Source of the DNA: Anthoceros angustus
Lineage: Eukaryota; Plantae; Anthocerotophyta
Length of the DNA: 64,000 nt
NCBI GenBank assembly: GCA_010909165.1
Contig: MU008201.1
Location: 248,001-312,000 of the forward strand
Direction: 5' to 3'
The position numbers and the translations under genes were made by a program. Below, piece by piece: positions 1,941 through 36,400 of this stretch. Under the pieces are notes generated by a model. It was given only the letters and a program-made list of their open reading frames with translations. It did no database searches and was not told the DNA's origin. Within the stretch, counting starts at the first letter, position 1. The number at the start of each line of letters is the position of its first letter.

Positions 1941-2832
1941 GAAAAGTACAACTAGTTTTATCCCTTTTGTCTGCTCCTTCTATGGGTCTCCTTCCAATCT
2001 CTACTGTCAACATTGGTCCGCGGTCGATAGGGTTTCGGTGTTGGCCTTAGCAGCTGGCACGAGGCAAGGGGATCCGTTGGGGGGCGCCCTTTTTGCCATG
2101 GCTCATTTTTGGGCTCTGTCCATAACTACCTCCTCGTTTTGGGATTGTATGTATCCCTCAATGGCGGACGACAACCATATCATGGAGTTAGGTGACTGGG
2201 TCCAGGGGGCTTTTGAACTCTTCTCTTCGGAGCTCTCCCGCCTCGGTCAAAAGATGAAGATTTTGAAGTGTAGGGTCTGGTCCTTCTCCGGCGTGGTGCC
2301 CTCTCTTCAGTATCCTAATTAGGGGGATATTGCTTTCCCATACGGCCTTCATGTTTTACGGGTCTCGATGGGGCCCCCAACTTTCATATAGGAATTTGTA
2401 GATGCAGCTTTGCAGGAGGACCTGGCACATATATGCGATCTCTCGCAATTGGGGGATCCACATGTGGCATTAGGTATTATATATTCTTGTTTTGCACGTC
2501 GACCATGTTACCTCCTTCGCACAGTTCCGCCCTCCTCGGGTTTCTTGTCCAACCTAAGGGATTTTGACAGGCAAGTTCTGCAGGCGCTCGCTGACATCAT
2601 TGGCCCGGGCACCTTCGAGTGTGCCCCTGGGGACTTGACCAGGCGACATGCATCCCTCCCCGTCGCGTTTTGGGGTCCTGGTCTTTTGGCCACGGAAGCC
2701 TCTGCGCCGGCGGCTTTCCTTGGGAGTTGGGCCCTCTCTGCTCCCATCCTGGTCTCCTGTTTCATCATCAGGGACCCTTGCATTTTGGAGTCCTTCATCG
2801 CGGGAGTGGAGGAGGGCATTTTTCCCCTACAT

Positions 2833-3290
2833 CTATCGGAGGTATGCTGTGAAGTACGAGAGGGACAGCCCCGCACCGTGCCTGCGTGCATGGCAAGCTT
2901 TGGCACAGGACTTGACAAATTTGTCAAAGTCCTCAGCCATTGCCTCATACGTTTCTAGTGGAAGCGGAATAAAGAGGTGGCCCACTTGCATCCTGCTATA
3001 TTTGCGCACCTTCAGAGCCACTGCTCCGGCAGCAGCCCAACCTGGACGGTTAGTGATAACCTGGGCGGAGATGGTGTCACATACTCCTAGGATCAATAAT
3101 CACCATATCCTCCACCAAAACCTGGTCGCCACGGACAAGGTACAAGTCGGCCCTGATTGAAGGACATGTACGGAGAGTATACCCCCGCTATCTCCAGGCC
3201 ATGTAGCCGCTTTTACGAGCGATGGTGAACATGACATTGCGGATGACATCGTGAGTGGCAATGCGATGACCCCATGATGAAGATGAGGAA
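2833..3290 (-). mobile_element. Opposite-strand fragment of an RLE-type endonuclease domain from a second non-LTR element
   Basis: Minus-strand translation HRIATHDVIRNV..ARKSGY / RADLYLVRGDQVLVEDMVIIDP / AAAGAVALKVRKY...FIPLPLETYEA, matching the RH/HD, R.D, D..I.DP, K..KY and F.P...E pattern of RLE domains. Confidence 0.7.
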
Positions 3291-3660
3291 AAATAGACTG
3301 TAGGAAATGGAAAGAGCATGGTGCCTTGGGTAAGGTTTTTTCTCGTTTTATCAAGGAGTGTGCTTTTATCAAGGAGTGTGCAAGGGCCCACGATAGGGAC
3401 GAGGTTAGCCTCCGTTTTTGATTGTCGTGGCTTATTTCAGGTAATGGATTTCATCGCCCTGCAAAGGGTATTGACCAGTGCCATCTTTAGAACGAAGACG
3501 CGGCATCGGTGGCACGAGTGTAAGCCCTTCCCTACATATGGCCCTTCCCTACATGAGACGGCGACATCTTAGGAGCGGTTGCGAGTTATCGGATAGATTA
3601 GTGTGGGGGGCATGGAGGCTGGGGAGGCTGGGGAGGCTGCGGGCGGCGCGTTGTGCCGCG

Positions 3661-3832
3661 TCGTGGGTTATCCCCTTTCGGCCCGGGGTGGATGGGATTC
3701 CCGTCGTGGGTTATCCCCTTCCGGCCCGGGGTGGATGGGATTCCCGTCGTGGGTTATCCAGTAGCGGCCCTGGGTGGATGGGATTCCCGTCGTGGGTTAT
3801 CCCCTTCGGCCCGGGGTTGATGGAATTTCCCA
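3661..3832. repeat. Tandem repeat, 4 x ~43 bp (TCGTGGGTTATCCCCTTYCGGCCCGGGGTGGATGGGATTCCCG)
   Basis: Units visible at ~3661, 3704, 3747 and 3790. Confidence 0.9.
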
Positions 3833-4673
3833 TCTAGTTCTTTTTGTAAAGTCTCCACATTCCCCGTTTGTGGAGGTAACCAAGACGCTGGAGGCATGTC
3901 ACTGCCTGACCGAGCCTGTTACCTTTAACAGTACGAGACCAGCCCTGGTTTGTTCTTTGTTCCAGTCGCCTACTTCGTCGCTGAGCCGGCCGCCGATCGG
4001 GGAACTCTCCTCCTGTCCTACGACTAGTCTATGCTACAGTAAGATGCTGGAGATGCTGCTGCCTATCTTGGGAAGAGCAGCGCATAGATGCCGGGTTCTT
4101 GAGGATCTTCGTTCACAGAATTCGCGCTCCCGAACTTGGTTAGGCCTGTGGCCTCGTAGTGGTCGTCTCCTCCTATGCTGAGCAGCGGGCAATGGCCAGG
4201 TTGAGCTGGTCCACATTATCGTCCAGATGGCATCCTGCGGGCATGCCGGATGTGAGAGAAAAGTTCAAGGTGAGTGAATGTCAGGTGCAAGAGTTTGTGG
4301 GTTTTGCAGATTTCATGCTGTGCAGATTTCATTTTGATTTTGACCATCGTCATCCAGGGACAGTTTTCTCGGCATCACCGTGACCTTTGAAGGAGATGTT
4401 CTGCTGTATTCTGTGCTGCTTACATGTGTTTCACGATTCGTGGCACAGTTTCACGATTCGTGGCTAGTTCTTCCAGGCATTTCAGGTTGTGGATGTCAGA
4501 TGTTGCAAGGAAGTATGGATTCTCATGCTATGGGCAGCACAATGGATGATACAGGATATTAGATGGTGCAAGACGAAGGAAGTAAGGATTCTCATGCTAT
4601 AGGCAGAATGGGGCCACAGGTACACATTGGAGAAGTGATGATCGGTGTTCACGTGATACAGGGCCTGAGGTGG

Positions 4674-7600
4674 TCAATTGTTCACGACTGCCTGACCCTT
4701 TTCTGCAGCTTGCATCAACTGGGCGGCTATGACCTTCCCGCTTTGCAAAACCATGTTGGCAAACACTCCCGGCTCCTCCGTTTCGGATGCCTGGCGTAGC
4801 AGGTTGGCGGGGGAGTCGAATTCCGCAATGCGCCCGCCCTTGGCCAGCACCAGGAGCAGGTCGGAGTCGATCACTGTCTCGATTCTGTGGGCGATTGTGA
4901 GGACAGTACAGTCTCGGAACACCTCACGCATGGTTGTTTGAATGAGTTGGTCGGTCTCTCCGTCCACAGCGGCTGTGGCCTCGTCCATGACGATGATTCG
5001 TGACTTGCGGAGGAGGGCTCTGGCAAGGCAGAGGAGTTGCCGTTGTCCAACGCTGAAGTTCTCCCCGTTGCTCACGACCATGCTGTCCAGGCTCTGGACC
5101 TTCTTCTTCAGGTGCACTTTGCGGATGGCCTCGTTGATGTCCTCATCTGCGTGCTGGTTGAAGGGGTCCAGGTTGATTCTGACTGTGCCTCGGAAGAGGA
5201 CAGGGTCTTGGGGGATGATAGACAAGCGTTGCCGGAGGTCATCTAAGCCTACAGATTTGATGTCTATGCCGTCCACCAGGATGGAGCCGGAGCAAGCCTT
5301 GTTCTCCACCATCCGGAACAGGGCTGCTGCAAGGCTGGACTTGCCGGCTCCAGTGCGCCCTAAAATGCCCACCTTCTTCATTGGTTCGATGGAGAAGGAG
5401 AGGTTGTGGAGGACTGGAGGCAAGTCCTCTCTGTAGGCCATGGTGTAGTCTGAGAATTCTATGGCACCTGTGCTGGGCCAGGCATCTGGGATCACTCCTG
5501 GAGGTGTGTGGGGATCTGCTTCGGTTGAGAGGTTGGCGTATGTTTGGATCCTCTCTACACTGGTAAAGTAGTTCTCGGTCTCTGCAGCCATGCGGATACC
5601 GTACTGGAAGAAGCCAGTGAGCTGCAGGGCCTGCACCAGGACAACTCCAGTTATTCCTGGACCAAGCTTGTGTCTGAGAAGGACCACCAGGAGGGCAGCT
5701 ACTGCAACGCACATGGCAGCGAGGCAGTCCAGCCTGATGCCCAGCCAGCGTCCAGCATGCACGAGCAGAATGTATGCCCGGTGGTTGGCATCAACCAGTG
5801 CGATGATGCGTTTGTGGGCTCGGGATCCCACCCCGTACGCCCGTATTGATGTCACTCCTGCCAGGGTCTGTGCAAAGTGCTCGTACATTGGGGACCGAGA
5901 TATGCCGTCTAGCCTCTTGAGCTCCCTGGATACCACCATGTATCTACGCTGCAGAAAGAAGAAGCCCATGATGAATGGTGGCATGACAAAGAGGAACCAG
6001 GGGATGAGTACTGCGATTATGGCAAGCGAGCCGAGGCAGCCCACCAAGTTCTCTGCAGTGGTGAAGGCAGTGAAGGGAAGCAGCTCATCGACCAGTGCTT
6101 GGTCTTTGCTGAACCTGTTCACGATCCTGCCCACAGGGTTCTGGTCGAAGAAAAGTTGAGGAGACCTGAAGACCTTCTCAGCCATGTCTGAATGCATCTG
6201 CTTGGCTGCTCGGACTGTTGCTTCTGTGAAGAGGATGGCTCGGCATAGAGAGAGGCAAAGGGCACCTGTCGCAAAGACCGCGTATGTGATCATATACACC
6301 TTTGTATGGAGTCCATACTTTCTGTCCACCCACGCACTCAGCCAGTAGTCCACCATCACTCGTACTGATTGTGCTAGGCTGAAGGAGATCACCACCACTA
6401 CCCACAGGCCGATGCCTCCATCTCTGAAGTAAGCCACAAAGTTGGACCAGTCCACCACTCCTTGTGCTCTGTCTTCTTCCACTGTGATGGCTCCAGTACC
6501 TCCTTTTTTGCTGCTGGGCTTCTCATCCCCATGCGCAGTTCGCTCATCTGCATCTTTATCTGTTGGAATGTGGTCCGGCTTGGGGTGGAGGATTTGCTCA
6601 CCAACCTGCTCTCCTGTCTCATCCGGTCCTGCAACTGTCTCCTCATGCACCTCTACATCAGCTTCTGTTGTCTGCACGCTCTGATCCTCGTCCTCTTTTT
6701 CTGTGAAGCCTTGGACTGCACTGTGCTTCAAGATGTCCTCCTTCGTCATACTTCGGAGCTGACCATTGTCCATAAGATAAACCCTATTGCAGTACTGCAG
6801 GGAAGTCCTATTGTGGGTAACAAGGATGACTGTCCTGCCCTTCAGAACTCCATCCAAGACATGCACCATCAAATGCTTTGCAGTTGGCACATCAACAGCA
6901 GCAAGAGGATCATCCAAAAACACAACGTTCACATCGCTATAGCACGCACGGGCCAAGCTGATCCTTGCCTTCTGACCCCCGCTCAGATTGATCCCCCTCT
7001 CCCCAATCTCTGTGCCATCTCCAGCTTCAAACTGGGTAAGGTCATGCTCCAAAGCACATGCAAATATGACTTGCTTGTACCTCGCTTCATCGTACTGCTG
7101 TCCAAAGATGATATTGTCTCTCACCGTTCCGTTGAATATCCATGGCTGCTGGGGCACATAAGCAACCCTCCCCTCAGTGTGATGAATCCCACCCAGAGTA
7201 CGCATCTCTCCTAAAAGGGCAAGAAGCAGGGAGCTTTTCCCACTCCCAACAGGCCCGACAATAGCCACCAAATCACCTCTTTCCACCTTCATGTTGACGT
7301 TGTTCAGAATAAATCGGCCAGCAGTATCCGACAAAGACCGTTGCAGCTGTTGCTCAACCGTATCCCCATCTGCAATCCTCAGACTCGTGCTTCTCCGGAA
7401 GCTACTAGAACTCCTCCTCGCACTCCTCCTCAGGCTTCCACTCCGGTCCTTGGAAAAGCTCTTCACGGGATTGTCAGTGACATTCCAGGAGAAAGTACAA
7501 CCGACTGCAGCAACGGCTTCTTTGGGAGCACCATCAGGTCCATAAGCTTTCTTCAGCCGCTCCACCGTCTCCTGATCCGAATTCCCATTAGGTAGGTCAA

Positions 7601-8816
7601 GCAGGGACTGCAGCCTTCCCACAGATATAAGAGCCTCTCCGAAAATCTGCACCCCCGTTGGCGCAATGGAATAAGTCCTCACAAGCACGCTGAACAGAGC
7701 CAAAATGGTGAACGCCTTGCTCGGGTTCAGGTCCCCATGATGCAACGCCACGTACGTCCCGAACGTGGCCAACGTCGCAAACGGAGTCACAGAATCCTTA
7801 ATAGCCGACGTGCAAGCCCTCAAGAAGGCAGTTCTCCTGATCCAATGCAGCTCCGCCTTCCGCAGATCCTCCACCTGCCGCAGAAACGCCGAAGTCCATC
7901 CATTGTACTTCACGACCCGGATTCCAGTCAGGATCTCCGCCACCATCCTCACCCTGGCATCGGTCAGCTTAACAGCCTTGCTCCTCAGCCTCCCGACAGC
8001 CCGGGCCATCCAGACCTGCAACGGCAGCGTCAAGAGCCCCAACGCCACCCCTGGAATTGCACTCACTCCAGCTTCCCAGATACAGAACCCTGCAACCACG
8101 ACGATTTCCACGACCGAGAACCACACGAAGTGGAAGTACATGGCAGCATCCAGCATCTTCTGCGTGTCATTCGTCACGAGGTTCAGCATCTGCCCGCTGC
8201 TGCTCTCCGCCAAGGCCACAGACTTCATCTCCAACACCTTCTCCAACACCGCCAAGGCCACGATAGACCGCATCTTCATCCCCACCTTCTGGCTGCGCGT
8301 GAAACAACTATGCTGGGTCACGCTCATCCCAGAAGACGTCACTAGCATTGCAACAACCAGCAACATCCCCCACCACCATTGCAGGTGCCTATCCTCCTCA
8401 GCACTCTTCACCAGGGCCTTGAGCACATACACCTGCAGCAACACCAGGGCCAGCCACACCGGCTTGTACAACGACGCCAGAAAGTACTCCCTCCCAAGAG
8501 CAGAAAAAAGCAGACTCCACACCGAGACCCTCCTCCCTGCTCCCAGCCCACCATTATATGCATGCTGCTTTCTCCCAATGGCAGCCTTCCACTGCTTCTC
8601 AGAGTACTCGGTCGTCTCCTTCGGATTCAGATCATACAGATCCTCTGCCTGAAGAGGCCTCTTGTTCCCCGTCTTCACCAGCAAGTAAACCCATTGCCAG
8701 AGATGCCAGTTGATTACGTTCGCCCTCAGCTCCGGGCTGGGTCCAGCTGTGGGCATACGAAACTCCCGCCCATCACATGCATCCACGTCGGTTCCATCCT
8801 TCTGCTCAGAATCCAT
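4674..8816 (-). CDS. ABCC: ABC transporter subfamily C (MRP-like), short form without TMD0, single exon, 1380 aa
   Basis: Continuous ORF with TMD1-NBD1-TMD2-NBD2. NBD1: GPVGSGKSS, LSGGQ, VFLDD, VTHN. NBD2: GRTGAGKSS, FSVGQRQ, IVMDEAT, IAHR. Lasso-like KRPLQAEDLYDL; FFDQNPVGRIVNRFSKD. Confidence 0.95.
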   Translation of the reverse strand: MDSEQKDGTDVDACDGREFRMPTAGPSPELRANVINWHLWQWVYLLVKTGNKRPLQAEDLYDLNPKETTEYSEKQWKAAIGRKQHAYNGGLGAGRRVSVWSLLFSALGREYFLASLYKPVWLALVLLQVYVLKALVKSAEEDRHLQWWWGMLLVVAMLVTSSGMSVTQHSCFTRSQKVGMKMRSIVALAVLEKVLEMKSVALAESSSGQMLNLVTNDTQKMLDAAMYFHFVWFSVVEIVVVAGFCIWEAGVSAIPGVALGLLTLPLQVWMARAVGRLRSKAVKLTDARVRMVAEILTGIRVVKYNGWTSAFLRQVEDLRKAELHWIRRTAFLRACTSAIKDSVTPFATLATFGTYVALHHGDLNPSKAFTILALFSVLVRTYSIAPTGVQIFGEALISVGRLQSLLDLPNGNSDQETVERLKKAYGPDGAPKEAVAAVGCTFSWNVTDNPVKSFSKDRSGSLRRSARRSSSSFRRSTSLRIADGDTVEQQLQRSLSDTAGRFILNNVNMKVERGDLVAIVGPVGSGKSSLLLALLGEMRTLGGIHHTEGRVAYVPQQPWIFNGTVRDNIIFGQQYDEARYKQVIFACALEHDLTQFEAGDGTEIGERGINLSGGQKARISLARACYSDVNVVFLDDPLAAVDVPTAKHLMVHVLDGVLKGRTVILVTHNRTSLQYCNRVYLMDNGQLRSMTKEDILKHSAVQGFTEKEDEDQSVQTTEADVEVHEETVAGPDETGEQVGEQILHPKPDHIPTDKDADERTAHGDEKPSSKKGGTGAITVEEDRAQGVVDWSNFVAYFRDGGIGLWVVVVISFSLAQSVRVMVDYWLSAWVDRKYGLHTKVYMITYAVFATGALCLSLCRAILFTEATVRAAKQMHSDMAEKVFRSPQLFFDQNPVGRIVNRFSKDQALVDELLPFTAFTTAENLVGCLGSLAIIAVLIPWFLFVMPPFIMGFFFLQRRYMVVSRELKRLDGISRSPMYEHFAQTLAGVTSIRAYGVGSRAHKRIIALVDANHRAYILLVHAGRWLGIRLDCLAAMCVAVAALLVVLLRHKLGPGITGVVLVQALQLTGFFQYGIRMAAETENYFTSVERIQTYANLSTEADPHTPPGVIPDAWPSTGAIEFSDYTMAYREDLPPVLHNLSFSIEPMKKVGILGRTGAGKSSLAAALFRMVENKACSGSILVDGIDIKSVGLDDLRQRLSIIPQDPVLFRGTVRINLDPFNQHADEDINEAIRKVHLKKKVQSLDSMVVSNGENFSVGQRQLLCLARALLRKSRIIVMDEATAAVDGETDQLIQTTMREVFRDCTVLTIAHRIETVIDSDLLLVLAKGGRIAEFDSPANLLRQASETEEPGVFANMVLQSGKVIAAQLMQAAEKGQAVVNN

Positions 8817-11800
8817 CGTTCTTCCGAATCAGATACGAAGTCACCCAACAAAGCCCACTTCCTTCGTGATTCCCGATCAATCTACCTCCACAATCGCCCC
8901 ACTACAAAATCCATCACCCATGGAAGATGCAGGTCCAGGCCATCGAGCAAGTACAGACTGCACAGAGGCTCCAGAGCCCTCTCCGAATTCCTTGTGCACC
9001 GCCCAAGAACTGAGACACCTGGGATGTGCATCCCGGATCGGATGGAGACCTGCAGAAGCACAGAAGAGGCACTCCTATTAACAAGGGAGGTCCAAGAGCG
9101 AAGCGCAGCATCGTCGCCCTCTCACTGGATGCTGAGAGCCTTGTCTCATGGGCGGAAGTGGCGGGGCAGATTCCGATAGGAGAGACAAGATCGAATCAGA
9201 ATCGTGAGCAAGTGCGGTGGAGAAATTCGTCACGCACGGAAGCGAGCCATTCTGATTCGACACCGCCCGCAGCAGGCTGCGGGTGCCGCGGGATATATAT
9301 AGAGCGAAGCATTTTCTGAGGAAAGAGGGCGTCGTGCAACTTGGGTGCTCCTTCTGCTTCGTTGGACCCTGTTGCATGGGCTACGGCAAAGATACCGCCT
9401 TCGTGCTATTCTAATGTGGAGTGGAGCAAGTTGTGGCGATTGTCGGTAGATTGCATCCTTTTGCTGTCGGACACCGGCCCTTTCGCTCCCTCTCCACAGC
9501 TGACATTTTGGCATGCGCTCGTCCAAATCCATTTCTGCTTCTGCATGCACATTCTTGGCCTGGGCCCCTGCAACCCAAAGGAAGCTCACAAGACGACTCC
9601 TACCTCCAGCTATTCCAGCATGGGTTCAGGGTAGACGATCGCGGCGGCTAGTTCCCTTTGGCCTCGGGCCCTTTAGTGGGTTGTTCCCCACCACCACGGT
9701 GTTCAGTGTCCATGGGATTCTCTATCTCTTGCATATTTTATAAACCCTCCATGTTCTCCCGTGCGATGCTGTATCTCTGCCTCCATGATGTCCTATCTCT
9801 GCATATTTTATAAAGTCTTCATGTTGTCCCTCCCGGTACTCCAGCAAACATTTTCTTACTGAAAAGATGGAGTGCGCCGAAGGGGTCAGCAAAGCGGGAT
9901 ATACCACCTATTAACAATGGACTGCCGCTGAAGAGCGACATTACAGTAAAAATTTATATTATTCTGGTGTACGGGGCCTTCAAGGTCTTACTATAGTGGG
10001 ATCCAATGCGGACATACACGAACCCGGACAGCTGAGGTCTGCTATCGAGCTTGAAAGGCCTTCCCTGCAGGGCCCATTTTGAGCCACACAAAAAAACAAC
10101 TCTTATATCACGGGCTTTACAAGAAATAAAGCACCAAGTGCCATGACAATCCGGACTCCGGCTTGACAAGTGATGGAGGAACATGAGACTTTTTTATGAA
10201 AAGGAGATGGGAAACTCATTTACCCAAAAGAAGAGGAACAACCCTTATGAGGGCACTAGACCTTGGGGGACTAACCCCCGATAAGTGGTAGAGGAACAAG
10301 AATAATGTGGAGATAGATGATACCATGTCGCTAGTGATTTGAAGGGTTATGTGAACTCATGATCACACCCAAGATGTCACTCTAAAAGGTAGGATACTCC
10401 AAGAGACACTTACATTGTCATATTATTCTAAACATATATCTTGGCCTGGGATCTAGACGAATGTTGCCTATCGACCCTGTGTAGATGGGACTTCCGATGG
10501 GACTTCCGCTTTGCATATTTTTATAAAGTTTCTAAGTTCTCGGGAGATATAACTTAAAAATATGTTATTTAGAATAATAAATATCTTTAAATTAAATTAT
10601 ATATTATTTTGATTTAAATTTAATTTATATTTGAATAAGATTCAAGTATGAGCTTTCAGTACTTGACTCTGTCAAACACATCAAAATCCATCACAAAGAT
10701 CATGATTTGAAACCAGGTTTTGAGATCTAAAAGCTTTAAAAACCGCACCTACGACATATGATTGCTACATAACCTTGTCTGAAAAAAAGGAGTTGTTGGG
10801 CACTTAATATCAAAATAATACTAAAGTAGGATACATATTATGAAAAAAGTAAATAGAATGAACTCACATTGCTCCTCTATACCACAAAGTTTGTAGAACA
10901 TTCATGCCTAAATTTTCAATTCAAAATGGGAAGTTACTTTAGCTCAAGAATATTTATTATATTTTAAAATATATTCTAAAAATCCATATTATTCATATCA
11001 TTATTCAAAACAGAGTACTAAATAATAATTAACAATAAATCTGTGAAAAAACTTGAAATTCGCTTTGGAATAATGGAATCTTTTATTGGAAAGAAACTCT
11101 CACTCACTTGTCCCAACTTTGTACATGATTTTTTGTGCTACCGTTGTCTAGAGGTTAAAGTTTCAAGTGGATACACCGATTTCATAACTTAATGATAGCA
11201 TAAATAAATCAAGCAATCAATCAAAAATAATTTTCTAAATCAGTAATTCTATATTTTTAAATAATTATAAAGTTAAGGAGTAAGATAATTATTGAAAAAA
11301 ATAAGATGATAATTGTAACATTTATTGGAGGATTATCTAAGCCATGACAAAAGACACTATGCTTTTAGTTCAGTAGTTTAACAAGCAGATGATTTATTCT
11401 AGGATATAAACTCTGGTTTTGAGATATATTTAAAGGATATGATATAGATATAATATTAATCATATTATCTCCAAGGAATCAACAATTTGGTAAGCTACAT
11501 ATTATTTTCAGCTTTCTCTTGGGAAGCTGGACAACGGAATCACTTGATGTGCAGCATTAAATAGAGCAGTCGGAAATAACGGTAACTCGCCTTTATGCAG
11601 GCGTATAGACGTTGGCAACTTTGGAGCTTGCAACGAGGTGACCTAAGCCTCCGTGGCATGTCAGCTGGTAGAGTGTGCCCCGTGAGCCCCGTCTCCCAAA
11701 TACTGAGAAGTTATTATGACCTAACAACGGCCCTGCGGTGGGCCATGTACGATATCTCTCTCTACGGCGTAGTCATATGTTATGCGACCATGGTTTCACA

Positions 11801-12796
11801 TCCATCACAATTCCGTGCGAAAGACCATGCTGCACCGCGCGGACGCGGCATCGGAAGTGAGTCCCGCGCCCGAGGCCGCTCCTCTTTGGAAAGTTATCAG
11901 CCATACTTAAGCCAAGCACGAAAGAAAGGGGAAGGGGCGCGGTCGCGCTAAGGTCACAAACACAAACCAAAGGGAGGATAAGCAAAACCTTGAATTCGCA
12001 TCAACAGGGCAGGGCGTTGAGCAAATGAAGTTCTCATGGCGATGCTGATGTGCCAATCCACCTGCCTGCACTTCGAGGACACTCTGTTACATCTGCGTGC
12101 CCGGGACAAGCCCCATTGCCTACCGACCATGGAGCAGCCAAGGATCTGAGCGCGAGGTTATCGCGCACGACACATCACCGCGCGGTAGCGCCACGTTACC
12201 CATATCACTCATGGCATGCTGACATCCTTTCTCTCCCTCTCTCTTGTCTGCACTTGCGTAGGAGAGAGAAATTCTGCGTTTTTAGGAGACGGGAATGTGC
12301 GCAGCCCTGCAGCAAAGAGAGAGACCAAGTCAATAAAAAGCAGGAAATCAGCCTTGACGAAGAATCAACCTAATTGAAGTCGAAGCAAGGAGTGCGACGT
12401 TCTTCGTTGCGAGGCCCTCAGACTTCAGACTACGAGCAGTCCGTCTCTTCACAACAAGGCTGATGGTTTGCTTGAGGAGATTGGTTGCTTCGTCCCTGGA
12501 CAATGCAGATGGCTGGTTACCACTGCATTTCAGCAGGTGACATTTGGGAGGGAAAACATGCACTGCTGGGGTCGGTGGAAGAATGATGAGCTGCAGGGAG
12601 TCAGGCAGCGCACTGAACTGAACTGGTATGTCCTACCACCCTCATCATGTGACTGGTTACAGGATCGTATTCTTACCCGATTGCAATCGGTATGCCAGCA
12701 CAGATCTCTATTGAAGTTCTGACCTCAATGAGTTTTCTCCACATGCATGTTCCACCAGAGGAAAGGCTCTCCACAAGGAGATACTCTCACACCCGA

Positions 12797-14262
12797 ATGG
12801 CAGAGTTCGGCAGTGGGGCATGGAACTCCAAGTTGGTGGCCACATTATGCCTGTTGCTATCGCTGGTCCAGTCCAACTGTGCTGCATCCTCATGGTGCAC
12901 ACGTGCTTTCACCCCAGCAACATGTCCTGACCCTCCAACTTTCGACTCCATCGACCTGAAAGCCTACACCGGCGTCTGGTACGAGATAGGTAGCACTGCT
13001 CGCTTCAAGCTTTCCCAAGAAGGAGTAACCTGCGTGTCGGCCCACTACACCTTCACCAAGCCGGCAAATTCAACATCCGGCATCACCATCGGCGTAAAGA
13101 ACCGAGGAATTCAGGTAAAACCCTAGCTCATGCATTCTCCCAGTGACAAGTGCTCCCACTCACGATCAACGCAGGAAGAGATGCATACTTCACCAACAGA
13201 GCTGGTTCCACCCGTACGCAGGTCGTCGGCCCGCTTGCCAAGGCTGGCATATCTCAAATAGATCTCGCATCCGTCGGCGCTTGCAACGCAGCCAGGTCAA
13301 TTTGCTCTGAGCTAGGACCTACCGGCCAGATCTCAGCAGCGCTCTCCCAGGTAGAACTCTACCTCCCTCCACAAAACCCTGGCTCCTCCAGAACCATTCT
13401 ATGCCACGCCTGATCCGATTTCCTCATCTTGAATCCAATCCAGGTGAGAGCACTGACGAGGCATCTCCAACCAAGCTCCGTCCACACATTCACCGCAGCC
13501 ACATCCAAAATCCAGAACGCCGTGAGCAGCCTGGCCGTGGGACTGAACGACCTGGAATCCAAGATCCGTCAGATCCAACAGCGAGCCTCCAAGCTCCTGC
13601 AAGGGGCCGGAAAGAAGGCACTCCAGCTGCAGCGCCTCACGGCAACGGCCTCGCAGGTCAGGTCCCAGGCCCTGTCCCTGGAGAAGAGCGTGGAATCCAT
13701 CGACTCGGCCCGATCCCAGCTCATCTCCGCCGCGGAAGCCTTGCTCCCGAGCAACCCGTTCGCGGCCGGCAAGCTCACATCCGCCGCCGTCGCCATCGCC
13801 GCCGAGCAGAGAAGCATCTCGCGCAGCCTTGCCGACATCCAGGCGGAGACGGCGTTCGCCATCTCCGCCGGCAGCAAACTGGTATCCGCCGACGATACCC
13901 GGCCGCTCACCGAGGCGTTCGGATTGGGCGTGGGCGTGCAGGACCGCACCTCCCCGGGTAAGCTAACCTTATACTTCCCGCAACCCGGCCACAAGCAGGG
14001 GACGGGGCCGTACTGGATAGCAGCGGCGACGGGCGAGGCCGCGTCCGGCTACGACGCCGCCCTGGTAGTGAACTGCGAACCGGGTCCGTCGGGCACGGTG
14101 TCCAAGTCCGTGTTCGTACTGTCGCGCAAGACCAGTCTGCCCATGGCGGTGGTGAACAGCTTGCTCACCTTGGCCACAAACTACGGATTTGATTTCGATT
14201 GTGAGGACCCCTTTATCTTTACATCTCACGGAGGCAAATGGTGCGCCCAAGCCTCCTCGTGA
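12797..14262 (+). CDS. Secreted ApoD/Blc-like lipocalin with a large internal helical insertion; exons 12797-13114, 13222-13350, 13444-14262 (~421 aa)
   Basis: Signal-peptide-like N-terminus; SCR1 CPDPP...DLKAYTGVWYEI; TCVSAHY; GKLTLYF; PYWI...GYDAALVVNC; SCR3 VFVLSRKTSL; C-terminal Cys. Two phase-0 GT..AG introns join three ORFs in frame. Confidence 0.85.
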
Positions 14263-21565: not shown

Positions 21566-22714
21566 CTAGCGACGGCAGACGAGGCCCTGGTTGCTCTCCG
21601 TGTTGCAGGAGATCTGGGGGAGGCTGCCAAGGTGCTCGGCAGAGGAGATGCCGTTGAACCTGGTGGCAGCGCAGTCAGGAGCCATGAGATGGGATGAGGA
21701 GAACAATCCCTCGTGGTGGAGAGTCCTCATGCTCTGGCCTGGCTTCAGCTCTGTTGTGTGGGTGAAGTCGGGGCGGTAGGTTTGGCCGAGCACGCCGTTC
21801 ACGCTCGGGGAGAGGGAGTGGAAGTTGAAGCTGAGCTCCAGATGGGCGAAGCAGTTGTCGGCGGTGATGCCGTAGTTGTGCTTGATGTTCTCCTCCTGGG
21901 TCACTGGCACCACATGCACCTGGAGAGTGAACTGGTTCTCCACCTCCACTGTGAGGAAATTGGTGGCCTCGGTCCTGCTGATCCTCACCCCGTCGTAGGG
22001 AGCAGCCCAGACCGACCCTGTGCCGGGTGGAAGAACAATGGGGCTGGCATCGAAGCCCAAGGTGAAATGGTCCACTTCGTTGTCAAAGCTGGCAACCTGC
22101 ACGCCACAACCCTTTCTGGTCATTGCTGCAGATCAGGAGCTCAAAATTTGAAAGATGAGCCAGGAAACAAATGAACGCAAAGATGGCCGATTCCCTCTCA
22201 CAGAGTTGTTAGCTCACCACATCGGCACCAATGTAAAGCTGGTGATCGCCGAAGAGGATACCCAAGGACTGCACCCAGGTGAAGTCCCGGTGCATCCCCT
22301 CGTTCCTCCTCCCGATGAAGTGGGCATTGATGTGGAGGTTGTTATCGGACACCAGGCAGAAATCCGCGTCCTTGTGACCGTGGAAGTAGAAAGCCACACC
22401 ATCTCCTCCGACCAGGGCGGGATCTCCACACACACCTCCATACTTATAACACTCTGCAATGCACCGCAACCTTAACAGTCAGCATCACGACGCAGTGCGA
22501 AACGAGGTCCACAATCTCCACAACACCCACAGAACTCTCCAATGCTCCATCACGGCATCAACATCCACCGCAACCACAACAGAAAACCCAACAAAACCCA
22601 CAAATGAACCGGAAGCAACAACACCAACTCAGCCGTACTTTTCCATGCCGCGACCCCCTGCAGAGCAGAGAGGACCAGAAGCGCGGAAGCAAGCAGAGCA
22701 GATCCGGAGGCCAT
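21566..22714 (-). CDS. Root-cap / LEA-related secreted protein, paralog 1; exons 22714-22639, 22453-22218, 22096-21566
   Basis: Signal peptide MASGSALLASALLVLSALQGVAA; CGDPALVGGDGVAFYFHGHKDADFCLVSD..LHINAHFIG; Root_cap motif NCFAHLEL.F.FHSLS..V.GVLGQTYRPD. Canonical phase-1 and phase-0 introns shared with paralog 2. Confidence 0.9.
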
Positions 22715-24331
22715 GGCACACGAGCTCCGAAGACGCAGCTGCCCGAGGAAGCAGGGTGAGGGACAGGGAGGACCGGTGTGCTTCCTAGAGGCGCTGGTAC
22801 TGCAATGTGGCAATGCCTCCGACTATAAACGAGGCGGCAAGTGGATTGTACAAGACAGCTGGAGGCCTCTGCCGAAGACTTGCAGAGCAGCTCCACAGCG
22901 CTTGGCTCACGATTGCTGCTCGTTCTCGGGCAGCACAGAGCAGGGGTCAATCGGAGAGAGCATTAAAAATTATCCTCCATTCTTTCATCATGGAGATCGT
23001 ACGACGCGGATGGCACGCTCGACTAATGGCGAGCAACAGGATTTTCAGCAAGAGAGCTGGTGCCCGACATGGTATGTACATGCTTCTGCCTTCTGCCAGC
23101 ATGTGATGCGTCATAAATTATTGACGACGTTGAAGAGACCACGAGACAAGTGCCCACCTCTCAATCGTTGGTACCACTCGTGATACGTCACGGGTCGTCA
23201 CAGCCCAGTTGTCAGGGACATCAACCATACACTATTGTATGCACTCAGGGTAACAAGGATGTTCAAACTCATACAAGTAACAAAGACACGCTGCACGACC
23301 TAAGCTTTTGGAGCTTCTTTTCATTCCTCACCGTCTGTTCCTGTTTCTGCGGAGGTTGGGATGAGATCAACCTCTTTGAAGTTAGCAAGTAAAGAATTAT
23401 TTTGTGAAAATAATAGAAATGGTTTATAATATCTGAGGACTGAGGACAGACAACTGCTGAAACATTACAGAATGGTCAAGTTTCTACAAACACCTTGCCC
23501 ACTCTCCATTGAATCACATGAAAAGATTCCCCCCATTCAGATCTGGACACCGCCTTATCCGTATATGTAGACGACACACCTATGATATGGAGGTGAAACC
23601 GTTGCGTTTTTGCTTTGGGATCAACACGAATGGGCGAGCCAACAACAGGCAAAAGACGAGGAAGGTGGGGCGGGGTTCGCGATATGTGAAGCTGAAAGCC
23701 ACGTTTTTGTCCTTCAAAGTGCGAAACATAAAAGAATGCAGGGGTGGATGAAGTTTAGCACGTGCCACCCATCCTCGAGAGTTGAGAATCGAGAGGTGGT
23801 CTGCCCAAGCTACCAAACTCCTGGACCGAGCACTGTCGTTTGCCAGCCTTATGTTGTCTTGGGCCTGCGTCGTTTGGCCTGCACTTGTGTGAAAGGGAAC
23901 TGGAACAGGAAGGTTCCGGACCCACAAAATCGACAAGAATCCTGAAAGCAGCCGGCCGGTTTCAAACAAAACGATTATTTATTGCATGTTCTTCCCACTT
24001 GTTCTTCGAACAGCAGGGGAGGAGTGGTTGGAGAAACCATAGACTACTGCTACTCCTTGCAGTCATCAACATGCCAGTCTTCCTGTTTACACTAATTGAG
24101 ACACTTCACCATAACAAGACAACATGCCGGGATGAGCCATCTGGGCGTTCTTAGAACTGCCATCATGATGTACGAGGGAAACTGAGCTTGAAGGAAGGCG
24201 TAGCATTCCCAGATGTAGTCGTCATCGGGGCATGACTTCCTCCATACTGCTGCGGCTAAGGTGTGATTCTGCCCACATTCTGGAACATTTTATGGGGACT
24301 GGGTGGGGGAAGCGAAGAAGATGGGAACATT

Positions 24332-25527
24332 CTAGCGACGGCAGACGAGGCCCTTGCCCTCGGTGTTGCAGCTGAGCTGGGGGAGGTTCTGCAGGACCTC
24401 GGAGGAGGAGACGCCGTTGAAACGGCTGACGGAACAGTCCGGCTTCATGAGGGAGGAGGAGGAGAAGGTGACCTCGTTGTGGAGGGTGCGCATGCTCTGC
24501 CCGGGCTTCACGACCTCGGTGTGGGTGAAGTCGGGGCGGTAGGTCTGGCCCAGCACGCCGGCCACGCTCGGAGAGAGGGAGTGGAAGGTGAAGCTCAGCT
24601 CCAGGTGGGCGAAGCAGTTGTCGGCCTGGATGCCGTAGTTGTGCTGGAGGTTCTCCTCCTGGCTCACCGGCACCACTCGGACGTGGAGGCTGAATTGGTT
24701 CTCCACCTCCACGGTGAGGAAGTTGGTGGCCTCGGTCCTGCTGATCTTCACGCCGTCGTAGGGCGTGGTCCAGGCGGCGCCGGCTCCGGGCGGCAGCACC
24801 ACCGGGCTCGCGTCGAAGGCCAGGGTGAAGTGGTCCACAGAGTTGTCGAAGCTCGCAACCTGCGAATGCAATGCATTGCAATGCGAACAGGAAGCTGATC
24901 AGCAATGTGCGGTTCTGCGGCTCGCAAGCAAGGTCCGAAAAAGGGGGAGGAATTTGAGTCCCGGCCTACAATCCAGGGCCGAGGGATCACCTTGTTGGCT
25001 CCAATGTAGAGCTGGTGGGTTCCGAAGAGGATGCCCAGAGATTGCACCCAGGTGAAGTCCCGGCGCATGCCCTCGTTCCTCCTCCCGATGAAGTGGGCAT
25101 TGATGTGGAGGTTGCTATCGGACACCAGGCAGAAATCGGCATCCTTGTGCCCGTGGAAGTAGAAGGCGACCCCGTCCCCGCCCACCATAGCCGGGTCTCC
25201 ACACACGCCTCCGTAGCCATGGCATTCTGTTATCGCCCACAAAGTTTACAAACAACCCAACAATGAGCTCCACATCCAGAATCCACCGCAATGTAATGTA
25301 CAGAAATGCCACTGCGAAGGATCACAATGAGCTACAATGCACTGCGATGGGTTACAGCGCAGTGCAATGCACGCCAATTCACTCAATGCGATGAGCTACA
25401 ACCACAGAGCATCTGACGCATCAGGAAAAGAATGCAGAAATCGCGTACTCTTCCATGCGTCCGCCGGGTGGGCAGCCAGAAGAGCCACGAAGGCCAGGAG
25501 AGCAGCGACGAGGAGGACGGAAGCCAT
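24332..25527 (-). CDS. Root-cap / LEA-related secreted protein, paralog 2; exons 25527-25449, 25226-24991, 24859-24332
   Basis: Same motifs, identical intron positions and an identical 236-nt exon 2 as paralog 1; signal peptide MASVLLVAALLAFVALLAAHPADA. Confidence 0.9.
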
Positions 25528-31509: not shown

Positions 31510-32625
31510 TCAACGAGATATTTTCAATGCAGTGAGTAAAAGATGCTCGAGTTTCGCATCCCGACACCTACGAGCAAGCTCGTCCATCGCAGTCTCGGGG
31601 AGCTCTTTGATGCCTGAGGGAAACCTGCGCAGTGCGTCGACGTCCTGACCTTGAGTTGGTTCTTCCTGCTCTGTTGCTCGGATTTGCATAAACTGCCATT
31701 TCAACTTCCTAATCCGTCTCACAAACTCCGCAACATCATCTGCCTCACCTTCAAATATGAGAAGTCCAGGAAATCCAGGTTTGCAATAGCCACCTAGGTC
31801 GAGTTTTGCACCCCACTCCTTGATGCACCGCTTCTTCAGAGAAGATTTGATATGGTGGAAATAGATTGACCTGCGCTCCAGCATCGGAGAGGGATGGTAT
31901 GACACAAGCTGCGGTGAAGAGGTTGCAGGATCCTCCGAATTGGAACAAAGTTGTCGCACTCTCTGCAACACTAGCAGCACAGCTTCTTCACCAACCATAT
32001 TATCCGCTGCAGCTTGAGCTTCCGAGTTGATCAGAACACGACGGTTCTTGGAAACACGGGCTTCGCATTCCACTGTCACAGATACCGGTTCCTGGATAGG
32101 GTAAGGCCGGGGGAGGGAGATGAGGATACTCACCCGGCCGCAACTCTCATCTCCCGTGGCGGCCAGGTGCACTGAGAAGCTCAACGTTAGGTCTGGTGGA
32201 GGCTCCGCTTCTTGATTCCACAGGTGTAGCAGCTCCAACGAGAAGCTCTCGTCATCTGTCATCCAAAACTCATCCGGATAGACTGAGCGTACTGCTTCCA
32301 CCTCCCTCAGTTGCCTGGTAAGGCAGTCCCGCAGCAAAGCCACCTGATCCTCACCTTCTTTGCCTCCGTCTTGTTGCAAGCTGCATGACCAAAGATCTTG
32401 CTCCTTGTTCAGATTCTTAGCCCTGCTATTCAAAGCTCGTACTGAAGCTGGTTCTGATAGCTGCCCTGGCGGTCGGCCGACTGGTATGACTGGCTTCCGC
32501 TTTCTCACCAGATTCCAACTTGTTGTATGCAATCTGTGGCACCCAACAATCCTCGGCACCCTGGTTTGTAGGAATCTGCGGGTTAGGCAACGTTGCATCT
32601 GCTGGCCTACTCCAATCACCAGCAT
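31510..32625 (-). CDS. RWD-domain + DUF1115 protein (RWDD2A/B-like), single exon
   Basis: RWD motifs QLREVEAVRSVYPDE and LPRPYP; DUF1115-like SIYFHHIKS..K...LGGYCKPGFPGLLIFEG....EFVRRIRKLKWQ. Confidence 0.85.
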   Translation of the reverse strand: MLVIGVGQQMQRCLTRRFLQTRVPRIVGCHRLHTTSWNLVRKRKPVIPVGRPPGQLSEPASVRALNSRAKNLNKEQDLWSCSLQQDGGKEGEDQVALLRDCLTRQLREVEAVRSVYPDEFWMTDDESFSLELLHLWNQEAEPPPDLTLSFSVHLAATGDESCGRVSILISLPRPYPIQEPVSVTVECEARVSKNRRVLINSEAQAAADNMVGEEAVLLVLQRVRQLCSNSEDPATSSPQLVSYHPSPMLERRSIYFHHIKSSLKKRCIKEWGAKLDLGGYCKPGFPGLLIFEGEADDVAEFVRRIRKLKWQFMQIRATEQEEPTQGQDVDALRRFPSGIKELPETAMDELARRCRDAKLEHLLLTALKISR

Positions 32626-33423: not shown

Positions 33424-36400
33424 TCATCTTACTGAAATTCTATTTTGGATAAGAACTGTTTCAGCCATGCTACGACTCTTGGAATGATTCGTATCCTGGA
33501 CCAGAAAACTATGCACCAGTCCCTCCATGTCTGTCCACCAGCACTGACCAGGCTGCTTTAGTGCCCTGGTTCTTATTCTCCTTGCCTGCATCTCCTGCGC
33601 CTCCTCCCACATTTGGGCACCAGTGTAAATGTTGGACATCAACAGATATGCTGAGGTATCGTTCTCGTCTAGCTTTACTGCTTGGTCGAAAGCATGGCGT
33701 CCCACCTCCATGTTGCTCCACTTTCGACAAGCACCCAACAAAGTGTGCCAAACTGCAGCATTAGGCAGTACAGGCATTGTCGTCACCAAAGCTACTGCCT
33801 CGTCCAGTAGGCCTGCACGGCTCAAGAGGTCCACCATGCATGTGTAGTGCTCCACTGTGGGACTGATGCTGTGATCTCTGCTCATGGCCTCAAAGTACTC
33901 TCTCCCCTTGTTCACTAGACCCGCATGGCTGCATGCTGTTAGTATACTAAGGAATGTCATGCTGGCTGGCTGTATGCCATCCTCTCTCATTCGCTGAACC
34001 AAGTCAAAGACTGCTTCAGTGTCTCCTTGATAGGTGTAGCCTGCAATCAGCGTACTCCAGGTGACAACGTCTCTTTCTGACAACGCATCAAAGACCTGCT
34101 GCGCCTCCACCATGCTCCCACACTTGCCATACATGTTCATCAAACTGCCAGCTACCAGCACATCAGAGTGGAGCCCTTGTTCTTCAATCTGTGAATGAAG
34201 CTCCCTTCCCACATGTAAAGCTGCCACATTTGCACATGCCTGCAAGAGGCAGACAAATGTCACGGAATCAGGTATCGTAATGCCTTCGTCCTGCATAGTG
34301 CTGTAAACACGAAGGGCTTCCTGACCCTTGCCCTGCTGGGAGTATCCTGCTATCATAGCCGTACAGGTCACAACATCTTTTTGCACAAGACCGTCGAACA
34401 CCCTTCGCGCCTCCTCTAGGCTGCCACACTTTGCATACATGTTTACCAAACTGCTGGCTATAAACACATCAGTTTCATGTCCGTCTTCTCTAATCTGCTG
34501 ATGAAGCTGCCTCCCCATTTCCAAAACTGGACTTCCTACTTTTGCACAGGCCTGCAGGAGGGATGCAGATGTCACAGCATCGGGCACAGCAATACCTTCT
34601 TCCTGCATGGCACTATAAATGCGAAGAGCTTCGTGCCCCATGCCTTGCTGGGAATACCCTGCAATTAGAGCCGTCCATGTCACTACATTCTTTCGTTCAA
34701 GGCCCTCAAACACACTCTGAGCGTCCTCCAAGCTGCCACACTTTGCATACATGTTCACCAAACTGCTGGCTACAAATACATCAGATTCGTGTCCATGTTC
34801 CCTGATTTGCATGTGAAGTTCTTTTCCCTTCTCCAGCGCTGGGGTGCCCAGGCTTGCACACGCTTGCAAAACGCCCACAAACGTCATGGGAGTGGGCACG
34901 TGGATGCCTTCCCTTTGCATAACACTGTAGAGAGAAAGAGCTTCCTGGCCCATGCCCTGCTGGGAAAGCCCTTGTATCATGGCATTCCACGAGACAACAT
35001 CTTTTTCATAAAGTCCGTTGAACACTCTTTCAGCATCTTCCAAGCTGCCACACCTTACATACATGTCTACCAAACTGTTGCCCACCAAGACATCACCATC
35101 ATGTCCTCGTCTACTACTTTCTGTTTGCAGCTCCATCCCCAACCCCAAAGCAGCGGTGCCCACACTTGCACATGCCTGGAAGAGGGAGACAAACATCACA
35201 GAATCAGGCACAGCAATGTTTTCTTCCAGCATAGCCCTGTAGAGACGAAGGGCTTCCTGGAACATGCCCTGGTGGACATACCCTGAGATTATAGCGGTCC
35301 ATGTCACCACAGTTTTTTGACCAAGTCCGTCAAACACTCTTCGAGCATCTTCCAAGCTGCCACACTTTGTATACATGTTCACCAAACTGCTGGCTATAAA
35401 AACATCAGATTGGTGTCCTTGTTCTCGACTCTGTGTATGAAGCTGCTTCCCCATCTCCAACGCTGAGCTGCCCACACTGGCACAGGCCTGCAGGAGGCAG
35501 ACAAATGTAAGAGAATCAGGAACAACAATGCTTTCTTCTTGCAGAGCACTGTAAAGACAAAGAGCTTCCTGGCCCATGTTCTGCTGAGAATAGCCAGTTA
35601 TCATGGCATTCCATGTGACCACATCTTTTTCACCAAGTCCATCAAACACTCTTCGAGCATCCTCCAAGCTGCCACACTTTGCATACATGTTCACCAAACT
35701 GCTCGCTACAAACTTGTCAGCTTCGTATTCTTGTTCTCTGATTTGTGTATGAAGCTGCTTCCCTGTTTCCAACGCCATGGTACCCACAGTTGCGCAGGCC
35801 TGCAGGAGGCAGACCAATGTTACAGTATCAGGTCTGACAATGCCTTCCTCTTGCATAGCAGTGAAAAGATGAAGGGCTTCCCGGCTCATGCCCTGTTGGG
35901 AATAGCCTGCTATCATGGCATTCCATGTCACCACATCTTTTCGACGAAGTCCATCAAATACTCTTTGGGCATCTCCCAAGCTGCAACACTTGGCATACAT
36001 GTTTACCAAACTGTTAGCTACAAATACATCAGCTTCATGTCCACCTTCTCTAATTTGTGTATGAAGCTCCTTCCCCTTCTCTAAAGCTGAGCTGCCCACA
36101 CTTGCACATGCCTGCAGGAGGCACACAAACGTCACGGAATTGGGTAACGCAATGCCTTCTTTTTGCATAGCCCCATAGAGACGAAGGGCTTCCTGGCCCA
36201 TACCCTGCTGCGCATACCCTGCAATTAGAGCAGTCCATGTCACCACATCTTTCTGACCAATACCGTCAAACACTCTTTGAGCATCTTCCAAGCTGCCACA
36301 CTTTGCATACATGTCCACCAAGCTATTGCAGACAAACAAATCATGCTCCAGCCCGCTGGCCAACACATCAGCATGCAGCTCCTGCCCTGTGCTCAAATCT

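Follow-up and report, generated by a model that had tools for sequence, protein, structure and literature searches.

Results

The locus

The window, by which we mean the whole stretch of 64,000 nucleotides that was analysed, carries on its forward strand a gene of three exons. All three exons consist of whole codons (106, 43, and 272 residues, the last followed by the stop codon), and together they encode a product of 421 amino acids. The features of the gene and of its surroundings are collected in Table 1. The product has the sequence of a lipocalin that is interrupted by an insert of ~195–200 residues, rich in Ala, Ser, Leu, and Gln.

Table 1. Features of the split lipocalin gene and of its neighbourhood (positions are those of the window).
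Feature	Position	Strand	Remarks
Exon 1	12797–13114	+	aa 1–106: signal peptide, N-terminal Cys helix, SCR1 GxW, barrel strands A–C, sequon N91; strands assigned from the structure model of a homologue
Likely signal peptide	12797–12883	+	aa 1 to ~29, hydrophobic core aa 13–24; from hydropathy
Intron 1	13115–13221	+	GT-AG, phase 0, 107 nt
Exon 2	13222–13350	+	aa 107–149: bundle helix 1 with the conserved CX6C pair
CX6C Cys codons	13282–13284 and 13303–13305	+	C127 and C134, within exon 2
Intron 2	13351–13443	+	GT-AG, phase 0, 93 nt, in-frame stop inside
Exon 3	13444–14262	+	aa 150–421 and stop: bundle helices 2–4, strands D–H, C-terminal helix, strand I
Bundle helix 2	13471–13602	+	barrel-proximal end holds the most conserved polar motif of the family (D..L..I.Q..L.Q.G type)
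Bundle helix 3	13618–13743	+	from the fold of exon 3 (pLDDT ~80) and the homologue model
Bundle helix 4	13756–13881	+	leads back to strand D; from the fold of exon 3 and the homologue model
C-terminal barrel half	13927–14247	+	strands D–H, altered SCR2 loop, SCR3 LSR, Cys360, Cys402, Cys416
ABC transporter gene	4674–8816	−	intronless, 1380 aa, two membrane and two ATPase domains, ABCC-like
Upstream element	11678–12295		~620 bp; imperfect 25-nt inverted ends at 11688–11712 and 12269–12293
Upstream sequence with contig breaks	12278–12705		breaks/rejoins at 12305/12402, 12305/12676, and 12494/12676
Root-cap family genes	21566–25242	−	tandem, PF06830
RWD protein gene	31510–32625	−	single ORF, RWD and Prp3_C-like domains (RWDD2-like)
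Pentatricopeptide-repeat ORF	33424–37227	−	long, intronless, PLS-type, ~1267 aa; read by eye

The ABC transporter gene is the nearest large gene upstream, and no functional link between it and the lipocalin gene is evident. The element of ~620 bp upstream of the gene is bordered on both sides by a 5-bp direct repeat, and contigs of a sister species appear to join its flanks directly; with its inverted ends, it therefore looks like a polymorphic MITE-like insertion. Closer to the gene, contigs from the source organism stop and resume at several points, which suggests that the genome holds further copies of this sequence, perhaps next to sister copies of the gene. The neighbouring genes, among them those of PLS-type PPR, root-cap family, neprosin, and DUF688 proteins, identify the source as a non-seed land plant.

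Support for the gene model

Six sequencing runs were compared with the locus; one gave no contigs, and the contigs of the others cross both introns unspliced. The reads behave like genomic DNA; the contigs were thus treated as DNA and carry no information on the expression of the gene. The three-exon model of the first-pass annotation is nevertheless borne out by the open frame, the GT-AG sites, and comparison with relatives. Both intron positions, with their phase, are identical in a homologue from another organism (copy b of a tandem pair on contig L001), and the second copy of the pair, copy a, shares the position of intron 2. In the sister species, which is ~93% identical, there are no indels in 1266 coding bases versus six in the non-coding DNA covered; two of the six are intronic 1-nt deletions, at 13196 (intron 1) and 13354 (intron 2). 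The similarity ends 9 bases past the stop codon. The exons are contiguous when placed on the family profile (positions 9–104, 106–147, and 161–418), and they abut on single homologues, residue 103 of P0009 being the end of exon 1 and residue 104 the start of exon 2. Finally, the homologues of Marchantia polymorpha (414 aa) and Selaginella (534 aa) are uninterrupted single ORFs, insert included, and a transcript-sized contig with a single ORF also encodes an insert-bearing homologue. Because of the shared intron positions, the intronic indels of the sister species, the abutting exons, and the intronless insert-bearing homologues, the splice model is, at the level of sequence comparison, well supported.

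These results bear on the possibility that the gene is mis-predicted or a chance fusion, the insert being intronic or spliced out and the true product being an ordinary lipocalin of 170–190 aa. The model of the locus does rest on comparative sequence and not on RNA reads. However, the insert is encoded in the intronless genomic homologues of Marchantia and Selaginella as well as in the transcript-sized contig, the window gene has its intron positions in common with the homologue of another organism, and the indels of the sister species avoid the coding bases. Such an error is extremely improbable, and for the family as a whole a splicing artefact is refuted, since intronless members encode the insert.

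The lipocalin barrel

Sequence searches with the window gene were run exon by exon, and the full-length structure model is that of a database homologue. Exon 1 matched positions 1–35 of Pfam Lipocalin_2 (E 0.003) and the end of exon 3 matched positions 61–138 (E 0.0008), both weakly. Among PDB sequences, exon 1 was closest to human ApoD (E 0.001). When the family profile was compared with human ApoD, two stretches of the latter, 5–63 and 62–153, were matched with an E-value of 8e-26; the insert therefore replaces the C–D turn, with the split at ApoD 62/63, where the first-pass annotation had located it. Lipocalins of the compact, single-domain kind have ~170–190 aa and a short C–D turn, and the protein departs from this pattern by its ~200 residues at that point.

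SCR1 is present in exon 1 as G59-x-W61, with the Gly conserved in 100% and the Trp in 96% of the family. SCR3 is present as L375-S376-R377, the Arg being 96% conserved. The TDY of SCR2, typical of kernel lipocalins, is altered: the Tyr alone is kept, and TD is replaced by a loop that is longer by ~5 residues. C43, C79, C360, and C416 align with the Cys residues that form the two disulfides of ApoD and sandercyanin, and by analogy we infer the pairs C43–C360 and C79–C416. The earlier count of four Cys thus holds as far as the ApoD type is concerned, but it falls short of the eight that land-plant members conserve, namely the ApoD four, a further N-/C-terminal pair (C34–C402, a probable disulfide), and the CX6C pair of the insert.

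AlphaFold2 was run on P0041, a Marchantia homologue ~30–40% identical to the window protein, with an alignment of 40 rows. The model (pLDDT 90.7, pTM 0.89) has strands A–C at residues 52–95, helices at 99–127/132–147, 152–194, 202–247, and 249–294, strands D–H at 303–373, a helix at 380–392, and strand I at 403–405; it thus has the lipocalin fold of an eight-stranded barrel followed by a helix and strand I. The exons of the window map onto it without conflict. In this predicted structure, the two halves of the sequence are shown to fit one ApoD-like eight-stranded calyx, as the first-pass annotation had supposed from motif alignment. The structure search returned ApoD as the top match of the barrel (Z 21.7, with 160 residues superposed at an rmsd of 2.1; Foldseek TM 0.83 by target); Blc (Z 20.0), TIL (Z 20.0), and VDE (Z 16.8) were also matched. 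The high pLDDT and pTM suggest that in the model the barrel and the insert have a defined orientation. Folded alone, exon 3 of the window gave helices 2–4 as in the Marchantia model and no barrel.

The inserted helical bundle

The model shows the insert as an up-down four-helix coiled-coil bundle standing at the C–D turn, with predicted helices of ~43–46 residues. Hydrophobic periodicity is 3.50–3.55 residues in all four, i.e., that of a heptad, in agreement with the long bundle of heptad character first proposed from the window. The insert has 193–224 aa in 21 of 25 full-length homologues and 132–180 aa in the other four.

Searched alone, the insert gave nothing specific in PDB sequences, Atlas, Pfam, or NCBIfam, and a search of a viral library found ordinary lipocalins and tape-measure helices only. 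Its best structural match was 6z0c, a four-helix maquette designed de novo, with which it aligns over 194 residues at an rmsd of 2.5 (Z 18.7). The resemblance to this and other generic four-helix bundles, such as antiparallel coiled coils, is one of topology and length; unlike the natural insert, which belongs to none of the families searched, the maquette is artificial, and at 10% identity there is no homology. The matches to natural structures were likewise generic, e.g., AhlB (Z 12.7) and HblL1 (Z 10.6).

AhlB and HblL1 invite the thought of a defence protein, in which the calyx would recognise a target lipid and the bundle would insert as an α-pore-forming unit; the protein being secreted would fit such a role. 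However, these Z values lie in the non-specific range for helical bundles and below that of the maquette. There is neither a transmembrane-like segment in the insert (the best 19-residue hydropathy is 0.85, and below 1.6 in most homologues) nor a hydrophobic tip, the hydrophobic tongue or hairpin of the ClyA type is absent from the window insert, with no conserved one in the homologues, and the distal tip is the least conserved part of the bundle. Pore formation is very unlikely, and the earlier suggestion of membrane insertion is not upheld.

The helices are amphipathic and rich in small residues, with few aromatics, and the bundle is of a size known for apolipophorin-type bundles. The insert might thus be like an exchangeable apolipoprotein that opens at a lipid surface (that of the cuticle, of oil droplets, or of membranes), the protein being a lipid-particle scaffold with a ligand pocket; one member has a weak Pfam match to ApoLp-III (E 0.0075). 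Exchangeable apolipoproteins are marked by 11/3 repeats, but the bundle has the period given above, and the signal at the heptad angle exceeds that at the 11/3 angle in helices 2–4 (0.31 versus 0.20, 0.32 versus 0.17, and 0.24 versus 0.12, respectively). Moreover, no apolipoprotein appeared among the best 50 structural matches. We consider this reading unlikely.

Conservation is uneven along the bundle. The proximal half has a mean BLOSUM score of 0.72 versus 0.33 for the distal half, a borderline difference (p ~0.05), with gaps of 2% versus 14%. The most conserved positions are both Cys and one Arg of helix 1, together with the Asp, Gln, Ser, and Gln where helix 2 ends; by chain topology these are the parts nearer to the barrel.

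The two Cys of the CX6C motif, the most conserved residues of the insert, occupy flanking (e-type) heptad positions on one face of a continuous predicted helix. An intrachain disulfide between residues i and i+7 does not suit a straight helix, and reciprocal inter-chain disulfides may instead be envisaged, by which the bundle would act as an oligomerisation or structural stalk, forming an antiparallel dimer that holds two calyces in the wall matrix. On the other hand, a local bend of the helix may allow the intrachain bond, and the pair is incomplete in algae, where one or both Cys are missing. Dimerisation of this kind seems improbable.

Secretion

The hydrophobic N-terminus is a likely signal peptide, homologues have the same N-terminus, and exon 1 carries one N-glycosylation sequon (N91). 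According to the supplements of PMC8792609, a Marchantia family member was found in cell walls extracted with salt, where 10 peptides gave 31% coverage, and also in a ConA fraction. Its 5-week/2-week ratio was 0.18, i.e., it was ~6-fold richer in young thalli; a search for ‘lipocalin’ in the supplement text covered here gave no such label. The detection concerns the Marchantia homologue and not the window gene. By analogy, the window protein is probably a secreted, N-glycosylated apoplastic lipocalin; the secretion proposed earlier thus gains support from cell-wall proteomics of a relative.

Distribution of the family

Exon 3, used in a full HMMER scan, yielded 32 clusters. A word-indexed homologue search with the same exon had given no match, a false blank in view of these 32. 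The named members comprise algae (Chara braunii and, of the Zygnematophyceae, Closterium, Mesotaenium, labelled ‘Mesen1’, and Netrium), liverworts (Marchantia polymorpha, Marchantia paleacea, Riccia, and Calypogeia), and vascular plants (Selaginella, Diphasiastrum, Ceratopteris, Ginkgo, and Cryptomeria). The gene models of Ginkgo and Cryptomeria look partly truncated. No angiosperm or moss was among the named matches, and these absences are provisional. The same split architecture is hence present in charophytes, liverworts, lycophytes, a fern, and gymnosperms; judged by these sequences, the split lipocalin is an old streptophyte family, reaching from charophytes as far as ferns and gymnosperms, and not a one-off. 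The members are labelled in databases as ‘lipocalin’, by automatic annotation, or as hypothetical.

In a tree of the C-terminal region, the window gene is joined to L001 copy b with weak support (81/79), and the deep branches are not separated; the row of L001 copy a, which is out of frame, is to be disregarded. The L001 pair (2741–7577; run SRR33208241) has one copy without intron 1, and in both copies the helix 3–4 region holds a third intron that is absent from the window gene. Another contig from this run, L002, carries a further homologue. Of the proteins P0003 and P0030, that of Selaginella is extended at its N-terminus by an additional Pro/Ser-rich (AGP-like) stretch, and in that of Chara a second long insertion separates strands B and C.

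Discussion

Relation to known lipocalins

The best matches by sequence and structure are secreted lipocalins of the ApoD, sandercyanin, and Lazarillo type. The family has its signal peptide, its SCR1 and SCR3 motifs, and four disulfide Cys in places equivalent to theirs, and differs from them in having a ~200-aa bundle for the C–D turn, a longer SCR2 loop, and four additional Cys. Plant TIL, CHL/LCNP, and VDE as well as bacterial Blc have the same barrel fold but are not secreted ApoD-type proteins. The extra domains of VDE flank its barrel and do not split it, and the sequence match of the family to TIL (E 1e-11) is weaker than that to ApoD.

The first-pass annotation had held that the characterised plant groups are not secreted ApoD-type proteins. 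To this must be added that a secreted plant group, the seedless-plant-specific lipocalins (SLL), has been described (bioRxiv 10.1101/2025.03.13.638958); an insert is not mentioned there. The same source bases the SLL on two genes of Physcomitrium, Pp3c11_15530 and Pp3c1_13830, and describes them as made up mostly of a single Blc-like lipocalin domain, as rare in vascular plants, and as lost from seed plants. Compared by description only, the two groups are alike in predicted secretion, in the Blc-like domain, and in occurring in charophytes and bryophytes. Unlike the SLL, the split family occurs in lycophytes, a fern, and, on partly truncated models, the seed plants Ginkgo and Cryptomeria, and no moss was among its named matches. 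It may be a subtype of the SLL or their sister, or it may have been missed by the SLL study.

No natural lipocalin is known to us in which a complete folded domain lies inside the barrel sequence. The first-pass annotation knew of none either, and no description of the split architecture was found in the literature searched, most subscription journals being outside its scope. As far as found, therefore, the split lipocalin is an undescribed, real, and conserved architectural variant of a known superfamily.

Possible function

The C–D loop of a lipocalin, loop L3, lies at the open mouth of the calyx. We infer, tentatively and at a little under even chances, that the protein is an apoplastic carrier of a hydrophobic ligand, the bundle being a lid or extension at the mouth of the pocket as well as a docking stalk. 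In the wall space, the calyx would bind a small hydrophobic molecule, candidates being a fatty acid, an oxylipin or peroxidised lipid, a cuticle precursor, or a pigment. The conserved, barrel-proximal end of the bundle (helix 1 with CX6C and the end of helix 2) would form the lid or extension that gates the pocket. Its variable, deletion-tolerant distal part would be the stalk that docks the carrier to a wall component, a surface protein, or a second subunit. The ApoD-like barrel, the defined orientation suggested by the model, the stronger conservation of the proximal half, and the cell-wall detection of the Marchantia member favour this reading; the altered SCR2 and the borderline size of the difference in conservation speak against it. 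It may be noted that the lid and docking stalk, the apolipoprotein-like bundle, and the dimerisation stalk are not mutually exclusive.

A broader idea, which we regard as rather unlikely, is that the family is a streptophyte-wide extracellular class of two modules, the pocket being mechanically coupled to the bundle. The ligand would gate or rearrange the bundle, or the bundle would lengthen the pocket into a long lipid tunnel; a role in wall, cuticle, or signalling would date from the charophytes and have been kept through the gymnosperms and lost in flowering plants.

The weight of the finding is tempered in that members are already annotated automatically as lipocalins, and their function is a proposed one. 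The family nevertheless offers a natural example of the insertion of a domain at the mouth of a lipocalin pocket, in an architecture that has been kept since before land plants parted from their algal relatives. The split lipocalin is a candidate for the transport of hydrophobic molecules through the wall in early land plants; and as a member, Mapoly0050s0013, is present in the wall of the model liverwort Marchantia and enriched in young thalli, this candidate role is directly testable.
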